A DNA stretch of 64,000 nt from Oikopleura dioica. Lineage: Eukaryota > Animalia > Chordata. Below are positions 25,631-41,900 of the stretch, in pieces. The position numbers and the translations under genes are program-made. The first letter of the stretch is position 1. The number at the start of each line of letters is the position of its first letter. The DNA lies in NCBI GenBank assembly GCA_907165135.1, contig OU015568.1:10726001-10790000 (forward strand). The letters run 5' to 3'. Under the pieces are notes generated by a model. It was not told the DNA's origin and did no database searches. It saw only the letters and a list, made by a program, of their open reading frames with translations.

Positions 25631-26893
25631 TTATATAGAAACTACCCTTTTCTTTGGATCAATTTCCGGTAGTTCATTCAGTAAAAGCTCTTCCGGAGTC
25701 ATTCTGATGTCATACAGCAAGTCAACAGTTACATTCACAAAACAGTGGTTAACTTCCTTCGCAACAACATTGTATTCCAAACTATTTAGTCCATCAAGCT
25801 GCCAAAATCGTTTTTCAATGAGCGCCTTGAAATTCCAGCGATTAACCATTGGCCGACGCTCAAGATTTTTGCGATTTCCAGAGTCGCGCTTGTGTTCTAT
25901 CATTTTGTAGCGAGCGAACTCTGGCGGTTTTCGGTGTATTTTGAAGTTTTCGCCCATAACGACTCGGCGGTACATGTCGTCGTCTTCACCTCCCCAGCCC
26001 CAGAATTCATTGCTAGAATGATAAGTTGAGGAGAAAAGATTCAGTTTGTACCTGAATCCATTGACAGCTTTGAACATTTTTCTATCCAACTGCACAATTC
26101 CACCAAATATCTTCTTATAGGGAATTCTATACCTAAACTTATCAATCGCTACCGAATAATGATTGGGATTTCCATCGCAAGAATAAAGGCATCTGTCATC
26201 TTCCAAAACAAGATCAACATCGTGAAAGACGAAACAGTCCATCGTTGGGTCGTCTTTTATAGCCTCTTTGTATCCAACATTGAGAAGTTTTGCGCGATTG
26301 AATGGTGAACCAGAGATTTGATTTATGATGTAGAAGCGAAAATGTAACTGTTGGCGTTTGAGTACTGAAGTATTCTTGAATCTTGAAACCCATCGAAATA
26401 GAATACCTGATATCATGTGTTCCAATAAATATTGCAAATGCCTCGTTCTAATCAATGCCTTGGTTTCATCCCTGAATGGAATAATAATCGCCACTCTTGA
26501 ATTTTTCGGCGGCGTGCACGTTTTTGGCTCAAACAGGCCAGTTTCATCGGGACCCTCGCGTTTGGCAATTTCTTCGAATGAGAGGGGAAGGTGATTGAAA
26601 GAAATGTTTAGCTTTCCTTGATATTCGATATGTTCGTCGAGGCAGAATTCAGCTGATTCAAGCGCGGTTGAAGTTGTATTGAAAACGTCTCCTGGCATCG
26701 TTGTTGTTTCGACTTGAGAAGGCGATGCTGCATATTGTCTTTCTGCTTTAGTCTTAGATGGGCAATAAGCTGAATTTAATGAAGTCGCGATTTTCTTTAT
26801 CTGGTAGTAATTCAGCGCAAGAAGAACGAAAACACCAAGGCACCGATGTCCATTAAGAAATTTGCAAATAGCTTCTATAATATTCTTTATCAT
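25631..26893 (-). CDS. Beta-1,4-galactosyltransferase-like (GT7)
   Basis: Type II TM anchor; RVAIIIPFRD; FNRAKLLNVGY; CFVFHDVDL; NEFWGWGGEDDD. Two in-frame introns lie inside the listed ORF. Confidence 0.9.
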   Translation of the reverse strand: MIKNIIEAICKFLNGHRCLGVFVLLALNYYQIKKIATSLNSAYCPSKTKAERQYAASPSQVETTTMPGDVFNTTSTALESAEFCLDEHIEYQGKLNISFNHLPLSFEEIAKREGPDETGLFEPKTCTPPKNSRVAIIIPFRDETKALIRTRHLQYLLEHMISGILFRWVSRFKNTSVLKRQQLHFRFYIINQISGSPFNRAKLLNVGYKEAIKDDPTMDCFVFHDVDLVLEDDRCLYSCDGNPNHYSVAIDKFRYRIPYKKIFGGIVQLDRKMFKAVNGFRYKLNLFSSTYHSSNEFWGWGGEDDDMYRRVVMGENFKIHRKPPEFARYKMIEHKRDSGNRKNLERRPMVNRWNFKALIEKRFWQLDGLNSLEYNVVAKEVNHCFVNVTVDLLYDIRMTPEELLLNELPEIDPKKRVVSI

Positions 26894-27335
26894 TTCTCTC
26901 TCTTTTCCTTCAAGCTATTTTGTTTGAAAAAAATCAATCCATCTTCATGTTTTGACAAGGTAAATTGGTGATGTTAAAGTAGCGTACAACCGCAATTTCT
27001 CCGCTAGTTCGAACAAACGCCGGCGGCTCCTGAATCTGAATTTTCTATAAAAACCATGGCCCATGGGAAACGAGCCTTTTTCTTGCTTGTCATTGCTGTC
27101 ATTATGTTCAATAAAAATATCAATTCTAGTCGCCAAATTAGTATTTTGGAAACTAAAACAGATGTTTGAAAGAGTCACAACAATAAATACAAAAATGACG
27201 GTCGAAAATCAAGCTGAGATAATTTTATGCATTTATAAGGTCGACAAGCATGAATTTTCACAGTCCAAACTCGTTAAAATCGCTTAGTTGTCTTATTCAT
27301 TCGCAAGGCATCAATCAAGCGATCGAAGAGAAGTG

Positions 27336-29451
27336 ATGCTTGTCCATATTTTAGTATTCCTTCAAGGAACTGTTTTTTCATTTTTGGCTGGAAATTGTAC
27401 TTTTGAAAGACCAAAAACAAGAACGATAGAAATTATCGGGCACAGAGAAGATTCGATTTACGCGAGGATTAAGCTTGTGAATTCGCAGCCGGAAGTTTTC
27501 TGGGGAGCCATCAGATTTCAATTTGCGTGTGCGAGCTTTTTGAAAAATGTTGAAGAGGGGATAAAACTGGAGTTTGATGTCTTTGATCAGATTAAGAACC
27601 TTTATGTGACAGAAAACTTCCGCTATGAAACTCCCCTTCTAACTAAAATGGACCCAAAACGATCTGCCTTTCTTCAATTCAGGAAGCTCAAAGCTCACAG
27701 TGATGAACTTGTTGGCTACCAGCTCGATTCCGATGGCTTCATCCTTGAGATTTCTGGAATCAGTAGTTTAGCAAACGACACAGATATTCGCAATTGTATA
27801 AAAAAGGTTCGAGTTCACACATTCGAAGATGATGGCGTTGCGCCCGGACAGGTTGATTACACAAAATGTCTTCTCTATAAGCGATACAATCAAGAAATTA
27901 ATTGGAACTTTATGAACACGACTAAAACAACTTCAACTACAACGACAACTACGACGACGATTACGACGACAACTACGACCACGACATCAACTAAAACAAC
28001 AACTATGACCGCCACCACCACCACCACCAGGACTACAACTACAACGACAACTACGACGATAATTACGACGACGACAATTACGACGACAACTACGACAACG
28101 GCTACGACCACGAGTACAACTACAACTACAACCACCACTACCACCACCAACACGACTAAAACTACAACTACGACGACGACTACAACTACAATCACGACCA
28201 AAACCTCAACCACAACACCCACTAAGACAACGAATACAACGAAAGCGCCGACAACAACAATAACTTCGAGTAAATCCACAACAACAATCATGGCAACAAC
28301 TACAACATCAACCACAAGCATAACCACGACAACAATTAAAACTACAACAACTACCATACGACAGTCAACAAATTACGTACACGATATTTGTACAACCTCC
28401 ATCTGGATCCTCGACTCTTACTACAGTAGTGATCGAAGCTGGCTATTCACACTCCCTGCTACCCTTAGAGAAAGTATTCGGGTCATTCCTGCTCTTCCAT
28501 CAAATATTGAACTGCCTTGTACGGGCCTTGTTTCTGGGGAGCTTTATATAATCTCGAACTTTGTTGAATCAATGTACAAAATTAATATGCATTGCGCTTT
28601 AGAAATAATTCATATTTCTCCTCCATTTTCGTCAAAAGTGGAGAAGTCTCATGAATGTGCTACAGACATTGGTAATGGCTATGTTTGGGCCGCAAACTAT
28701 GGAACTTTGGTTAAATTTGATGGAACTTCTTGGACGGAAGTATCGACGAGAGGAGCAGAACTCCATAGTACCGGAATACAAATATGGAAGGGCTTTCCGC
28801 TAGTGATTGGTGGTGGCTTGCCGGAAGGTGGCGTAGTTGATACCGTCGAATATTTTACATATGGCGACAAGAATCGATGGAGGACAAAATCCAGTTTACC
28901 TAAAGGTTTTTTGAATTTAATTGACTCAATAAAAATTTTATTTTTAAGGAGTTAAGTCGCTCTCGTCTATAAATATTGAAAGTGCAGTGATAACAGTTGG
29001 AGGTCTGACGTACGTGGATGGAACAAGCCAACGAGTTGGTGAAATATTCAGCTTCAAAGGTGACGCCTGGACAATTGCTGGTGAGCCACTTATTCAATAT
29101 AAGACGATAATCATATGCATTAGGCAACTTATTGACTGCAAGAAACCAATTATCAATATTCAAGCTGTCAAGTTCAACGTTTTATGTCATCGGAGGTTGG
29201 GGAGATAACGGAACCTCACAACCTGGCAAATTAGCCGTCGAAAAAGGTATCATCTTCATATATTGATCGTCTTATTGCGAGTAAAAACATTGTGTATAGC
29301 CATTTGTTTCAATAAAGACTGTTAATTAGTATCGATCGCGCTGGACACCGCGTCTTCTGAAGAGGTTACATCGATGGCGTCATTTCAAGCCAAACCAATT
29401 TTGGTGGATCATTGTTTGCCACAAGAAATGAGCTCATTTACGCTTGTCTAA
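27336..29451 (+). CDS. Secreted mucin-like Thr-rich protein with C-terminal kelch-like repeats
   Basis: Signal peptide MLVHILVFLQGTVFS; about 145 aa poly-Thr stalk; repeats PLVIGGGLP..VEYF, VITVGG..IFSF..W and FYVIGGWG. The 3' end is uncertain. Confidence 0.7.
27919..28360 (+). repeat. Low-complexity ACN (poly-Thr) coding repeat
   Basis: Imperfect ACA/ACT/ACG/ACC trinucleotide tract. Confidence 0.95.
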
Positions 29452-34834: not shown

Positions 34835-37144
34835 TTATTGATTTTCATCCAACGTAACGTAGATCCAGTCCAAATAGTCAGATACCTTCGTGTAAATACC
34901 AGGAATATCTTTAAATAAATAATAAACGAAGACAAAATTCGATTATACTTTTTGCTCCACATTTGTAGTTAATTGTTTCGCCATCTTTTTTCTTTTGTGA
35001 TTGAACGCCATATGAAACGATACCGGTCAAATAAAATGGCTGATTGTCATCGCCACTTTTCGCATTGGGATTTTTACAAACCACAGGTCCACCAGAATCA
35101 CCCTGGCAAGTGTCGACCTTTCCATGGCCAAAACAAAGCTGATGTTCCAAAACTTCTGGTCTCTGGTCATCACTGATTCCTTTAGCTGAGTTGAAAGCTG
35201 CTTGGCATTCGCTTCTACGAATATGGCGAACAAGGGCGACTCTTGAATCGACGAATTTTTTTCGTTGATGAGCTTTCATTGGCGTTAAAGAAATGAAAAA
35301 GCAAAATCTCAGTTTTTAAATTTGTTATTCATTAACACCTTACTGTATTTCTTTTCTCAACTTCCTCGTTTCCTCCATCAACAGTTCCAGTTTGCAAGCC
35401 CCAACCGCCAATCATGCAGACAGAGTTCGGCTCTAATTTTTTTGATGAAGCTTTTTTGTTCGGAAAAGCGGCTCAAACCTGGTTCAAAATTTATTGGAGG
35501 TAAGCAAATCGGACTGACCATTCCGTTGAACCAAAATGGCTTCTTTACTTGAATCAAGCTTATATCGAAGCCTTTTCCCACAGTTTTATATTTAGGGTGG
35601 TTAATGATATTCTTAGCTTCCTGTCGTTGGCCAAGGCAGTTCATACTGTTCTATGGACTTAAATCGCTATTAATTTCAAGGAGGATAAAATACCGCTTCG
35701 TGCACTTTCCCGTCGATATTAGAAAGTCCTGCGACAACCGTGGTGGATTCAGGTTGCATTATTTTCTTCAAATCGAAGCAATGAGCCGCAGAAATAACGA
35801 AGAGAGGGTGAATAAGGGCAGCACCACAAAATTGTCTCCATGATTCCTATAATCTATTTGATGTCAAGATGATCGTTCTCAATACAAACCTGACAGATAT
35901 TATATTGTTCACTACTAGTTTTTTCTAGGGCAACGAGCCATGGAGTCGAACCTGGAGGATTTTTGTATCCGTTGATGGTTCGCATAGAAAATTCAGTGTC
36001 ACTAAAAATATCAAGAGCGCAATGATTGTATATATTTACGCGCTAGAAACTTTCTCTTCCTCTTCTTCCTCTAAAACTTTTGCAATTTCTCCAGGATCAG
36101 CCATTGGAGGGCATTTTACCGCGTCGGTACATGGTCGGTTATCCCGCCAGGGGTCGAGAAGGTCGATAAAATGTGCCGTCTCATTATCAGTGTTCGACTT
36201 CCAGCTTGATAGATCCCACGGAATAGATTGATTTTGTCCATGTTTGGTAAAACGCAAGAAAGTTCTGCTACATCCACAATTCGGAACACTGCACGTGTCA
36301 TAACGAACGCCCTCTGTTTTCGTATAACACCAGGGTTGATTGTAAGCGCCGCAAGATTCTGGCGTTATTTGATTGTAGTCAAAGTCAGCAGATCTACAGA
36401 CGCTTATTGGACCAAGAACTTTTCTATTTGAATCTGGTTTATCCCACCTGAAAATAATTATCGAAAGTAAAGAAAAAACTAGAACCTATCACAGGTGTGT
36501 CCACCTTCAGTACTATCAAGAGTCCCGCGATAATATTGACCGCAATCAGCAAACGGGGTGACTTTCATTTCGTCTTTAACTTTTGCCTTGAACTCGTCTT
36601 CCCCGTTATTCGGAGCCGATTTAAGCTCATTGAAAAGTCCCTGGTCGGTCATGATACAGCTTCCCTTGTACGCACTGATCTCGTACCCGTTTGCCTTGAC
36701 AAGAAAGTTCTGCTCGATCTCGCACTCTCGCGTCCAAGCATCTTTATCGCAATAAGGAACGTCACAGTACTCCCAGTTTCTTCGCCTACTATCTGTGTAG
36801 CACCACGGTCCACCAGGTCGCGTAGGTCCTGTGTTCCTGCAGAAGTTTCCATAAACTCTTTTAACTTTTCTCTCTCCATCCAATGTTTCAATTGGTGTTA
36901 AAATAAACGACTTCGACCTTTTTGGATTTCCCCATTTTGCACACTCTTTTGAACTCATTTAACTTTTGACCATTCCAAATTTCTACTCACCTGTGCCATC
37001 TCTCGTAACATTAATTGACCCTCTATAAAGTATTCCTCTATCTTCACGGTGAGCCAGACAAGTGACTGTTTTTCGTTTTGCCTGACTCCTGCAAATCGCA
37101 TGTGCACTGCCCAAAAGCAGCAAAATATCTCTTAGTAACCTCAT
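34835..37144 (-). CDS. Secreted 2x kringle + trypsin-like serine protease
   Basis: Signal peptide; kringles (YRG..NFCRN..GPWCYTD..WEYCDVPYC; YRG..PWCYT..DTCSVPNC); intact triad SAAHC / DISL / GDSGGP; Asp in the S1 pocket (DTCQ); ends IPGIYTKVSDYLDWI. Confidence 0.88.
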
Positions 37145-37301
37145 TTTATACTGTAACAATCTTCCAATGATCAAGCACTGGAAAGGCAAACAAACAAGAA
37201 TCCCGTTTCAATTGAATTTTGGTTTATTTATTTTCTCAATAATTTACAAAAAAGGCTATGTTTGGAACGAATGCAGTTATTTATAAGAAAAGAGAAAGTT
37301 T

Positions 37302-38995
37302 TTATTTCTCGCATTTGACAGTTGTGAGCATCATTGGAATTTCAGGCACTCGCCGCGCCGGAGCTGTTTTCTTTCTCCTCTGAGAGGATGTCGGCGAGAT
37401 CGTTGAGTTTGGAGAACTGGTAGATTTTGTGTCGGGCGTTTTTGGCAAATCATCGTTCTCCATCACTTCGATTTTGGTATCTGGGCTAAGAATATCGTTA
37501 GATTGAACGTCAGTCATTGTTGATTTTACCTACCTTTCTGGGTTAATAATTGGCTCTTCTTCATCATTTTTGTCAAAAGCGATTCTTGACCGCTTTTCAG
37601 GGGGCTCATCGGAATGATCAGATTCAAAGCTCACACCGTTTCTAACGTTTCCGTTGGCCTGAAAGAAAGTTGATTAGAAACTGATTCGACCTTAATTTCT
37701 GTATTTTTCATGAGTGAATTCAAAATAGAGCTAATCTCTCAGTGGGGTCTCCTCTCAACCGAACGGGGCCGATGATCCGACTCAGACCAGAGGATCATCC
37801 AGCTGAACGTCGATGGGCTCAAACTGTGATTATGATTTGAATAATTAATAGTTAGATGGGGATGAGGCGTGCTCAGCATGACGATTCGCGGCTGAGGCGA
37901 ATCTCGAGGGCTGAGCGCGCGCGAGAAGCAAAAATAGCTTCGTCTGTTCTAACTTACAGGCAGGTGACTGTGAGATGACTGGAGTGCTTCGCGGATTTTC
38001 TCGGCTTCTTCGTAAAATGGTCGACGTTCTTCAAGGCCTAATGAGGACCACTGGCGGGAAATAGAGCGTTCCAGGAGAACTGGACTTTCCTAACGAAACA
38101 ATTTCAAGCTGAAAATAGAAATACTCCAACCTTTGACTGATCTTGAAGAGCTTTGAGACGCATGTGATGCGAAAAGACCATGTAAGCGTTAATCGTAGGA
38201 ATATGTGACAAATCGGCAGGTGAAGACGAGCAGTCTTCCGGATTCGACTCGTCATCCTTTCCGGAAGCATTTACAGCCGTGTCTTGCCCCGATCGCTTCT
38301 GACCCGGCTTTGGTGATTTCGCAGGGCTCTGTGAGCGGACACTGTCAGAGTCTACCGGCATTTTTTGATGGAAGCCGTTTGCTGATCCGTTAAGAGCGGA
38401 AAGAGCTGGGAGGCCAAGACCGAGGAGGGGACCAAGAGATGCAAGAGAACCGAGCGAGGCGAGCGAGTCGACTTTCGGGCGCATACTGTTCAAGACTAAA
38501 AAGGAGAATCTTTAGTACCGCTTTATTATTAATCTTAACTAAGCTATGACGATATTCAAAGCCCTTTTATTAAATTCATAATTATAAGGCTACCTTTTTC
38601 ACATGCGGAAGTAATATGGGAAAAATTCAAATTGGACGCGGCTCGGTACACTTCTGTCACATTTGACGGCTCAAGCGTGAACGAGTTCGTGTAGCAAAAT
38701 TCCATAAGCACGACGAAACCACGTGCAGGTACTCCGGCAAGGACGAAGTTGGTCTGGTCATCCGAGTTGCGAAAAAGCGAGAGGAAGTAATCGGAGTTGG
38801 CAGCAAGGATGGACCGATGCGCTCGGAATTTCTTTCCTTCCACGTGTAGTGTTACGTCACAGAAGAGATCTTAATTACAATTTTGAAACAGTATTTGAAA
38901 AATATACTTTACCTTTCATTCTTTGCTCGTTGAGACGTTGCAGTACAAAGGTGGTATGTTTAATCGGGAGAATGTTTGTTCTATCTTCCTGGGAC
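37302..38995 (-). CDS. BTB/POZ + HMG-box protein (5' end probably further upstream, candidate exon 41661-41788)
   Basis: [44 protein letters not shown] (BTB). Spliced PTINAYMVFSHHMRLK..ISRQWSSLGLEERRPFYEEAEKIRE (HMG box). Confidence 0.8.
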
Positions 38996-38999
38996 CTAA

Positions 39000-41900
39000 A
39001 CAAGTCCGGTTAGAATCTGATGAATCCGTAATTATGCTGGTTTATGCAAAACCAGTACTGCACTAGTCGCCGAGAAAGTACTTTTTGGCTAATGCCGCTT
39101 GAGCTGATTAAGGTGTCCGGCTGTCATCCCGGTGTTTTAAAATCGACACTATTTTATAAACGAAGTTTATCACAGTTTAGTTTCAACCCGGAGGAAGCAA
39201 AGACGCGATCAAGATAGGAAGCTAAAAGTCCAATGGTTCCCCCGAAAGTAAATCTTTCCGTTTGAAGAATAATTTTTCTACGGTAGTACTCAAAATCACA
39301 TTTGCGAGTCAGTTAGAGGCGAATGTTTGATATTAATTCGAGATATTCTTCTCTTCAAAATTATGAAGGTCTCATGCAATAAATTTGATGCCAAAATGTT
39401 CTCGTCTGGATTTCGAAATTTATTTTTATAAAAATTTAAGTGCTCAGCGCTCTGCGCGACTGGTAATCATCCGGATTAGAATAATTTCGATTTTGTTTAG
39501 GCAGTTGGCGGAGATCTTGCAAGCTGAGCCCATCAAGAGGGTTTGGATATAAAATGGAAACTACCTTCTGAGCTGCAGCGGGTGTGAAAATCCGATGAGC
39601 CTTACCGCAATCGTTCTTTTCCTAGTAGAACTTTTTTGTCTATTAAGAAATATCTTTCGCTTATTGAATCTAATAAACTGAGAACGTACCAAAAAATAGT
39701 TAGTCGAATCAGTGCCAAACTGCCCATGAGTGTTAGAATGCGCGAGCTCTTTACTTGAGCCGAGACGGCTGGTCTAAGCGGATGATCTGCGTAACCAGGG
39801 AAGCATGTTTTGCGCGGGATCAGCCTCAGCGGCTTGGAATAACTACCGGTCGGTGCAACACATGTTCAGCCGGGATTAGCACGTGACCTCGCGCAGATGA
39901 CCCCGAGAGCCGACTTGTACATGCATAAACGATGCCGAATAACAAAAGAGAGAGCTAGTACCCTTCCTGCTTAGGCGGCTGAGCGAAGCTTTATCTCGGT
40001 TCCTTCTAAATCCTAACCTTGACAAAGAAGTTCACTTCAACTCTTTGTTCATTTCTATTTTAGAGTTAGATTTTTTCTTTCATCGAGTGATTGAGATGCT
40101 CGAATCTCAAATCCCTGTTTCCAATGAAAATTGACAACTTCAAATTTATGAAAATCTCGGCGCCAGGCTCGCTTTTCGTCCAAACCGCGAAGCCTATTAT
40201 ATAGTCGGCTGAGCTGGAAATATTTCTCAGATTTAGGCGTCCGTAATCCGCTTCCGCCACTTCTAACAACATTTCCAAAATCCCAAATATGTGGCTGCCA
40301 GAGCCCCCAGCCCAAAAGGGGATTCGAATGGCTCAAGCTCGTTCAACTCGCCGCTAAAGCCGGAAGGAAATAAACGCCTTGGTTAGATTTTTTTCTATAA
40401 TTGAATTTCTTCAACTTCTTGCAAGATTAATTAAATAAATTCATTCGATAATAAATATTTTTCTATTTGGCCTTTTGTTGGTTTTTGATGAATCTCATTT
40501 TAGGAAGTCCAAAAATGGCCCTACAAAAGTTCAGCTTATAAAAGGCAGCTGAAAGTACAACGGAGCGACAACACTTGAGCATAAAAACGAGCACGACTAC
40601 TTAGAAGGCTGAGCGGGATAAGCCGTGTTCAGCAGGATAAGACAAAAGCCAATTTTTCAACCTTTTGTTCCTTCTGGATAAAGAAGGGTGGGAACATTTG
40701 CATGAGCCGCTTTTGGGAGATGAGCAACTTTTTATCTCCGAAAGAGAAATTTCTGTTGAATTAGAAAGAGGGCTTCTTGGTTGATTTCAGCGATCCTAAG
40801 TAGAGGTCGATGGCGAGAGGTAAAAAGTGTCGCATGAGCGTTTGAAATGGTCTATAAAACCGTTTCCGTAAATAAGGGCAAGTGCGTTATTAGATCAGTA
40901 AATCCTCTGGGAGCTCGGCCGCGAATGGAAATCCGATTCACAAGTCGGTACCGGTAGCGTTAACGCCCCGCCAAACGGTTAACCTTCTTAACTTCTTTAA
41001 TCGATTCCGTCCCTAACAGGGGGATATCCGACGGCTTCCCATTCCCACTAATTTCAGTAATCAAGTCGATCCCAGCTTGGCCTTCATTTGTGGATTCCGC
41101 CTCGCACACAGGTGCACCTGTCACCTCAAGACCCAAAACCATTTTCGACGGCTTTTCTCAACCGCCCGGTAGATCCTTACTCAACAACAATCAATCGTCG
41201 ATTCTTTTTATAGCCGCTTACTAAATCCTAACTTCCAAACAAAAAGTTATCTGCCGGATTGGAAGGAGGACAGCTCCCGCGTAAATTGTTAATTTCTTGC
41301 GAAAGGGGCGCGCTCCGGAAGCGATTTCGTATTCGGATGGGATAAGCAGATGAATAGTGCCCGAGCACGGTTTTAAATATTGTTTTCATTTGGGGCGCCT
41401 TTCTCTTTTTGTCCAGATGATCCCACCGGTGGAATAGGTAGCGCGGCGCATCCGGTTTACGGGCGGTACTCGGGTGCGATTTGGCGCAGGCTAAGCCGAT
41501 TATTCAAATTTCAATCCGCTTTCGCGAGTCTCTCGCATGGGGCTTAGCCTCACGCGCTCCCATCGACTTTAGCTTTGAGCTCAAAACTAAACTCTATTCA
41601 TGGCTTTCATTATCCAATTTTCCAATCATGAAATCTGCTGTGCCCAAAACTAAAACTTACATTTCTGGTTTTCTTTGGCGCATCCGTCGGTTGTTTAGGT
41701 TTTCTTCAAGCTGTCTTTTTGGCGATGATTCTCTCTTGGAAACAATTCTTTCTCGAGGTAATGATCTTCGAATCTTTGATAATTTTTTCTTATGAAAAAA
41801 AATAAAAAAAATTTAAGGCTTCCTACAGCATGAGCTGGCGAATCCGTTGTGTGTGTGTCTGGCGGGTAGCGCAGCTCGGATAGGTAAAGCTCTAAGCCAA

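Follow-up and report, generated by a model that had tools for sequence, protein, structure and literature searches.

The window (the whole 64,000-nt stretch of Oikopleura dioica DNA that was analysed) contains a gene that appears to unite a BTB/POZ domain and an HMG box in one protein: a real, constrained combination of a BTB domain with a putative DNA-binding domain, confined, as far as we have seen, to one lineage. Our preferred reading of the protein, to which we assign a probability of roughly 60%, is that it would form a BTB dimer with two flexible HMG arms that bind and bend DNA.

Six coding exons were recognised, running from 38995 to 37302 on the minus strand with GT-AG boundaries throughout. 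They encode, in this order, the BTB domain, a low-complexity linker, the split HMG box and a basic tail that ends in psi-K-x-E. The features are as follows:

38913..38995, minus strand: first recognised coding exon (exon 1), entered in phase 2 and left in phase 1
38594..38869, minus strand: exon 2, the BTB/POZ domain, ending ...ITSACEK
38131..38495, minus strand: exon 3, the linker and the first half of the HMG box, opening with the junction codon G/TC (Val) and then LNSMRPKVDSLASLG...
38131..38202, minus strand: N-terminal strand and helix 1 of the HMG box, IPTINAYMVFSHHMRLKALQDQSK, within exon 3
38090..38130, minus strand: GT-AG intron of 41 nt that interrupts the HMG box, falling between profile positions 25 and 26
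37958..38089, minus strand: exon 4, helices 2-3 of the HMG box, ESPVLLERSISRQWSSLGLEERRPFYEEAEKIREALQSSHSHLP
37534..37658, minus strand: exon 5, with the basic motif EPPEKRSR(I/L)xFD (PPEKRSR at 37584-37604)
37302..37485, minus strand: last exon, with a Ser/Pro-rich stretch, a basic patch and psi-K-x-E
37350-37382, minus strand: the basic patch SQRRKKxxPARR of the last exon, conserved
37308-37319, minus strand: the C-terminal psi-K-x-E motif of the last exon, VKCE
37302-37304, minus strand: stop codon TAA of the last exon
37223..37232, minus strand: two overlapping AATAAA polyadenylation signals, read from the sequence, 70-79 nt past the stop

Exon 1 encodes (R) plus 27 residues, which form the N-terminal strand/helix extension of the BTB domain. 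In exon 3, LNSMRPKVDSLASLG leads into the low-complexity Ser/Pro linker; an acidic patch, D-SN-ED, comes next, and the exon closes with the first half of the HMG box. The basic motif of exon 5 is a candidate nuclear localisation signal. A sequence-only reading of this locus had already pointed to PPEKRSR and VKCE in the tail: both are present and conserved, but both lie outside the interval 37975-38950 that it had given for the gene. The five introns between the recognised exons measure 43, 98, 41, 299 and 48 nt, and those of 41-98 nt fit O. dioica. Intron 4 (37659-37957), at 299 nt, is far longer than its neighbours, and a GC-rich stretch within it, CGCGCGCGCTCAGCCCTCGAG..., may represent a small element inserted there. 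Judged from its sequence, the locus is probably one protein-coding gene of at least seven exons, counting a 5' exon that carries the ATG and is missing from the list above.

Several observations bear on this missing exon. Exon 1 has no ATG; its acceptor AG occupies 38996-38997, with a TAA in frame further upstream, at 39010-39012. Five lineages share the acceptor (AG/GTC), and on its upstream side their sequences are T-rich and cannot be aligned. Three of these five (the window, L014 and L019/L020) lack an in-frame ATG in the interval from the upstream stop to R-S-Q; only the other two have one just upstream of exon 1 (MKLKF... and MRLVV...). Bearing in mind that the spliced leader of O. dioica also contains no ATG (PMC6883708), the start must be supplied by a short cis 5' exon. 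Comparison of the upstream regions of the five lineages by tblastx and blastn did not find that exon, and similarity in these regions was returned only between two near-identical lineages. One candidate start, the ATG at 39125-39127, could join exon 1 only via a non-canonical GC donor and was not adopted.

Three neighbouring genes or reading frames were also observed in the window. On the same strand as the BTB-HMG gene, and starting approximately 40-90 nt past its AATAAA, is a gene for a protein with kringles (GPWCYT...) and a trypsin-like serine protease domain (CQGDSGGPVVC; 34900-37190, minus strand); the two genes may constitute an O. dioica operon. The list of open reading frames further includes a 555-residue frame with a very long Thr-rich, mucin-like run (27288-28955, plus strand) and a single-exon frame of 420 residues that, by eye, resembles a beta-1,4-galactosyltransferase (25631-26893, minus strand).

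Domain searches were run exon by exon. Exon 2 alone matches the Pfam BTB profile (PF00651) with 83.7 bits and E 1.3e-23, against a cut-off of 20.5, over positions 10-104 of 110. Its best PDB matches are MIZ1/NAC1, BACH1/2, myoneurin, ZBTB7A and BCL6: BACH1 is the best single-domain match (1.5e-15), and the top chimeric chain includes NAC1. All of the top PDB matches belong to the long-form transcription-factor class of BTB domains (ZBTB/BACH/NAC1), which bears out the ZBTB-style assignment that had been made from the letters alone; all of the peptides then quoted are encoded on the minus strand. The exon-1 peptide matches the MIZ1 chain only at E 0.05 when searched by itself. Pfam, with E values up to 10, returned no C2H2 finger in any of the six exons, again as had been claimed; the gene is closed by its stop codon and AATAAA, and the kringle protease gene is the next one. 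Furthermore, none of the exons has a Pfam match to BACK or Kelch, nor to bZIP or BEN.

The HMG box is divided between two exons: INAYMVFSHHMRLK closes the exon at 38131-38495, and ISRQWSSLGLEERRPFYEEAEKIRE lies in the exon at 37958-38089, beyond the 41-nt GT-AG intron. Exon 4 alone matches Pfam HMG_box (PF00505) at profile positions 33-67 with E 4e-5 and 24.4 bits, against a cut-off of 25.4, and it matches HMG_box_2 with E 4e-4. SOX17 is the best of its PDB matches (1.3e-4), which also include SOX18, SRY, SOX30 and SOX9, and among named ESM Atlas clusters those nearest to it hold Sox HMG fragments (0.87). When the 24 residues that close exon 3 (IPTINAYMVFSHHMRLKALQDQSK) were searched alone, neither Pfam nor the PDB gave a match; in a ten-sequence set, the exon-3 tail does line up with positions 5-22 of the N-terminal halves of other HMG boxes in this genome, of SOX, TCF and CIC type (E 0.004-0.02). 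With residue 30 of this tail on profile position 25, and the first residue of exon 4 on position 26, the two halves abut without gap or overlap, as a correct 41-nt intron predicts. The box that the sequence-only reading had described as split by an intron thus appears to be complete and correctly spliced, with four independent similarity measures behind it.

By these comparisons the HMG box seems to be a divergent, SOX-like one, closest to SOX17/18. It departs from a strict SOX definition in its signature, which reads PTINAYMVF against RPMNAFMVW (four of nine positions match). Identity to SOX17 is about 20 of 65 residues (~30%) in an alignment made by hand, its second half taken from the PDB match and its first half set in the register of the same-genome boxes. 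In this hand alignment the box keeps the SOX core Trp and the R-P-F-x-E-E-A-E helix; the basic K-R that precedes P-M-N-A-F in SOX proteins is I-P here, their DNA-facing Ser is Glu, and their C-terminal basic Y-K-Y-R-P end is missing. No lineage varies at the minor-groove Asn or the wedge Met of SOX boxes (I-N-A-Y-M). With several SOX DNA-contact positions changed, DNA binding is not assured.

Evidence that both domains are maintained was derived from marine-metagenome contigs (L006/L007/L009, L014/L019/L020/L021 and L018), which with the window make up at least four well-separated lineages. The BTB exon retrieved open reading frames at 86% identity from marine-metagenome assemblies, Tara Oceans among them, and exon 3 retrieved ten further metagenome frames that add more lineages. 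The same six exons are colinear and on one strand in independent metagenome assemblies of at least five diverged lineages, and all six are open in every lineage compared. In the DNA alignment the exons are conserved with third-position changes, and no GT or AG has shifted position. The introns are unalignable between lineages; intron 2, for example, is 98, 192 or 50 nt long, and below 100 nt in a fourth lineage. The intron in the HMG box is shared, in position as well as in phase, by L006/L009 (63 nt) and L018 (41 nt), and all ten of the metagenome frames retrieved by exon 3 end in QSK, continue with V (the GT donor) and then diverge into unrelated tails.

Purifying selection acts on both domains, where it is strong, and on both tail motifs in several of the diverged lineages. 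When the window is compared with L006, pS is near saturation (0.55-0.87). For helix 1 of the HMG box pN is 0.035 (pS 0.55), for HMG exon 4 it is 0.097 and for the BTB exon 0.095 (pS 0.84; 86% identity in relatives); exon 1 has a pN of 0.044 and the linker one of 0.29. The exon-1 peptide, which precedes FCDV, is 87-93% identical at the amino-acid level to its counterparts in other lineages; of the differences in exon 1, 16 are synonymous and 3 non-synonymous. Exon 4 is 86-90% identical in relatives. Across nine sequences, 22 of 24 positions of the HMG segment P99-K121 are invariant, and P-T-I-N-A-Y-M-V-F-S-H-H-M-R-L-K-x-L-Q-x-Q-S-K has only two variable positions. The motifs of the tail are also kept across lineages: EPPEKRSR(I/L)xFD, SQRRKKxxPARR(V/L)PE and the terminal psi-K-x-E, the last of which reads VKCE in the window, VKVE in L006/L009 and KVEVKVE in L018.

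Two differences in exon structure were noted among these lineages. L018 is without the intron between exon 1 and the BTB exon (L018:4418-4786, compared with 38870-38912 in the window). In L006/L009 the linker exon matches in two frames (L006 6697-6849 and 6822-7145), which suggests an extra intron in the linker region of this lineage.

Another key observation concerns the four codons that separate the exon-3 acceptor from the first ATG of that exon. In four lineages they read V-L-(N/T)-S, followed by M, and they are written as GTC, then TTG/TTG/CTG/TTA (Leu), AAC/ACA/ACA/ACG and AGT/TCA/TCG/AGT (Ser): the residues are kept through synonymous switches, including a full change of serine codon. 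The Val arises only when splicing brings the phase-1 G of exon 2 next to the TC of exon 3, and two more distant relatives encode ACEKV in one exon, matching the Val that is made here by splicing. Since these junction codons lie upstream of the ATG and are kept synonymously, the BTB domain and the HMG box occupy one frame and are not two cistrons of an operon. The claim that the two domains are fused therefore holds, the codons at the junction of the BTB exon with the linker/HMG exon being translated in one frame, and we regard the fusion frame as established at the DNA level.

Against this fusion we have weighed a model in which the locus yields two products: a BTB-only protein that ends in a retained intron 2, plus an HMG-only protein that begins at the MRPKV ATG (38482-38484). 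Either the two would be separate isoforms, or the locus would be an operon in which the spliced leader is trans-spliced to the exon-3 acceptor. In favour of this model, O. dioica possesses operons as well as a spliced leader. The 19-nt 3' end of the leader sequence (PMC6883708) has 53 exact copies in this genome versus 1 for a control, which marks the genome as that of an O. dioica-like tunicate and not of a human. Furthermore, the ATG four codons into exon 3 is conserved, and in-frame stops occur 5-13 codons past the BTB exon in three lineages. However, an untranslated leader is not expected to show the synonymous switches of V-L-(N/T)-S, among them AGT to TCA/TCG; donor and acceptor remain in phase 1 everywhere; the tails read through past the BTB exon are unrelated to one another, and in one lineage the frame stays open for at least 40 unrelated codons; and in distant relatives ACEKV lies within a single exon. 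We consider it quite improbable that two separate proteins replace the fusion. An additional HMG-only product or isoform that starts at the conserved exon-3 ATG may nevertheless exist. Smaller by far is the chance that the gene model is an artefact or describes a decaying pseudogene, with an HMG-like reading frame that happens to lie beside a BTB exon: the start codon was not found and searches of the protein libraries brought up no annotated full-length protein, but six exons are open in every lineage, pN is far below pS, the splice sites are conserved, and the HMG box is recovered by four independent similarity measures. We give this explanation almost no weight.

With regard to function, a role as a 'transcription or chromatin factor', as the sequence-only reading put it, is what we too infer from the domains. 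BTB domains of the class found in MIZ1, BCL6, BACH1 and NAC1 form obligate swapped homodimers. Our preferred reading is that the BTB domain would likewise make this protein a homodimer, in which the linker (~90 residues, Ser/Pro-rich and predicted to be disordered) would carry the two HMG boxes on flexible arms. The dimer would bind and bend DNA at paired minor-groove sites, and in this way the protein would serve as a transcription factor of an architectural or repressive kind, as do BTB-zinc-finger, BACH and NAC1 proteins. The basic patches could serve in nuclear import and/or make extra DNA contacts, and the terminal psi-K-x-E could be a sumoylation site. DNA specificity would be weaker than that of SOX proteins, or different from it, and the basic patches downstream of the box would help binding. 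We think it unlikely, yet worth serious consideration, that the HMG-like fold no longer binds DNA and has become a protein-interaction module, with the BTB domain as a scaffold or as a CUL3 substrate adaptor. The hand alignment lends itself to this explanation, in that the N-terminal strand no longer has the basic contacts of SOX boxes and the box lacks the basic end at its C-terminus; exon 4 also falls just under the Pfam HMG_box cut-off. On the other hand, the minor-groove Asn and wedge Met do not vary in any lineage, two conserved basic patches lie downstream, and the BTB domains most similar to this one come from DNA-binding factors and not from Kelch adaptors. The adaptor role in particular is made less likely by the lack of a BACK or 3-box region after the BTB domain.

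How widely the combination occurs was assessed within the genome, in distant relatives and in protein libraries. In the 64.3-Mb, 19-contig assembly searched for copies, where the window occupies 10.73-10.79 Mb of the 17.1-Mb contig C1, the gene is single copy: the exon-4 peptide matches itself alone, the nearest BTB paralogue in this 64-Mb genome is 35% identical, and no HMG box was found beside the other BTB loci. Orthologue-like BTB genes are present in distant relatives, namely L013/L022 (ENA ERZ22157276 ctg13790l; 2.4-Mb contig) and L015-L017 (JGI 3300001913, ERZ27241785/6). Exon 1 is 52-63% identical in these genes; the BTB exon is in two parts (70-76% and 39-45%), with an ACEKVY... exon; introns are 0.7-2.7 kb long, with extra ones inside the BTB domain and before ACEKV. 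No HMG exon was detected within 9 kb (L015) or 16 kb (L022) downstream by tblastn, phmmer, two purpose-built profiles and the use of same-genome HMG boxes as queries, and the positive controls of these searches matched. Ten open reading frames downstream in the distant relatives also had no HMG match in Pfam.

A protein library of 1.84 billion representatives was searched. When each exon was used as a phmmer query, an HMG box like this one was present in 0 of the 150 best BTB matches; Pfam, applied to 20 of those 150, likewise found no HMG box, and the proteins are of Kelch, zinc-finger, multi-BTB or BTB-only type. Neither the BTB exon, searched against the same library, nor word-index searches with exon 3 and with region 80-170 returned a spliced or named full-length protein: the database proteins found are genomic read-through frames of 60-198 residues only. 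In the literature, we found no paper that names a BTB-HMG combination, and none of relevance on Oikopleura BTB proteins.

Among the sequences compared, then, the combination appears to be found only in the O. dioica group of lineages. The proposal that the factor is lineage-specific is consistent with the distant relatives in which no HMG exon was detected within 9-16 kb downstream, with the count of none among the 150 nearest BTB proteins and with the lack of a paper naming the combination. BTB exons without a detected HMG exon in the distant relatives fit a gain in the O. dioica clade; most likely the gene arose there when an HMG-box exon pair was inserted into an older BTB gene; the HMG box may instead have been lost in the distant-relative lineage, or its exon may lie further away. 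We therefore advance only tentatively, at slightly less than even odds, the full form of the insertion account: that a transcription factor with a BTB domain and a SOX-like HMG box was invented within the O. dioica clade, by insertion of the HMG exon pair into an older larvacean BTB gene, and is absent from other appendicularians and from all other animals. If that is true, the BTB-HMG protein of this clade represents a previously undescribed class of BTB DNA-binding factor. The gene would also be a clean and datable case of domain shuffling in a fast-evolving chordate, in whose sister lineages the BTB gene seems to persist with no HMG box.

BTB domains are known joined to several DNA-binding modules: zinc fingers, bZIP, BEN, Psq and FLYWCH. 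The protein described here resembles the BTB-zinc-finger family (ZBTB/POK; MIZ1/ZBTB17, ZBTB7A and BCL6) in its plan, in which a long-form BTB domain at the N-terminus is joined through a disordered linker to a nucleic-acid-binding module at the C-terminus, and it shares with that family the start of the BTB domain, H-x-x-x-L-x-x-L-N-x-Q-R...FCDV; it differs in that an HMG box takes the place of the C2H2 fingers. In BACH1/BACH2 (BTB plus bZIP) and NACC1/NAC1 (BTB plus BEN) the same type of BTB domain is joined, as here, to a DNA-binding domain other than zinc fingers, but neither bZIP nor BEN was detected in this protein. It is thus placed in none of the ZBTB, BACH or NAC1 families, because their second domains are absent. 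With SOX proteins, and most closely with SOX17/SOX18 of group F, the box shares the spacing from the N-A-(F/Y)-M-V motif to the core Trp and the helix 3 sequence R-P-F-x-E-E-A-E-x-(L/I)-R, whereas its signature (PTINAYMVF instead of RPMNAFMVW), its hand-aligned identity of ~30% and the lack of a Y-K-Y-R-P end set it apart. SOX proteins of groups D and E dimerise via coiled-coil or DIM regions; no SOX protein is known to carry a BTB domain. To the known partners of BTB domains, the HMG box would add a minor-groove, DNA-bending module, and the result would be an HMG protein that is an obligate dimer.
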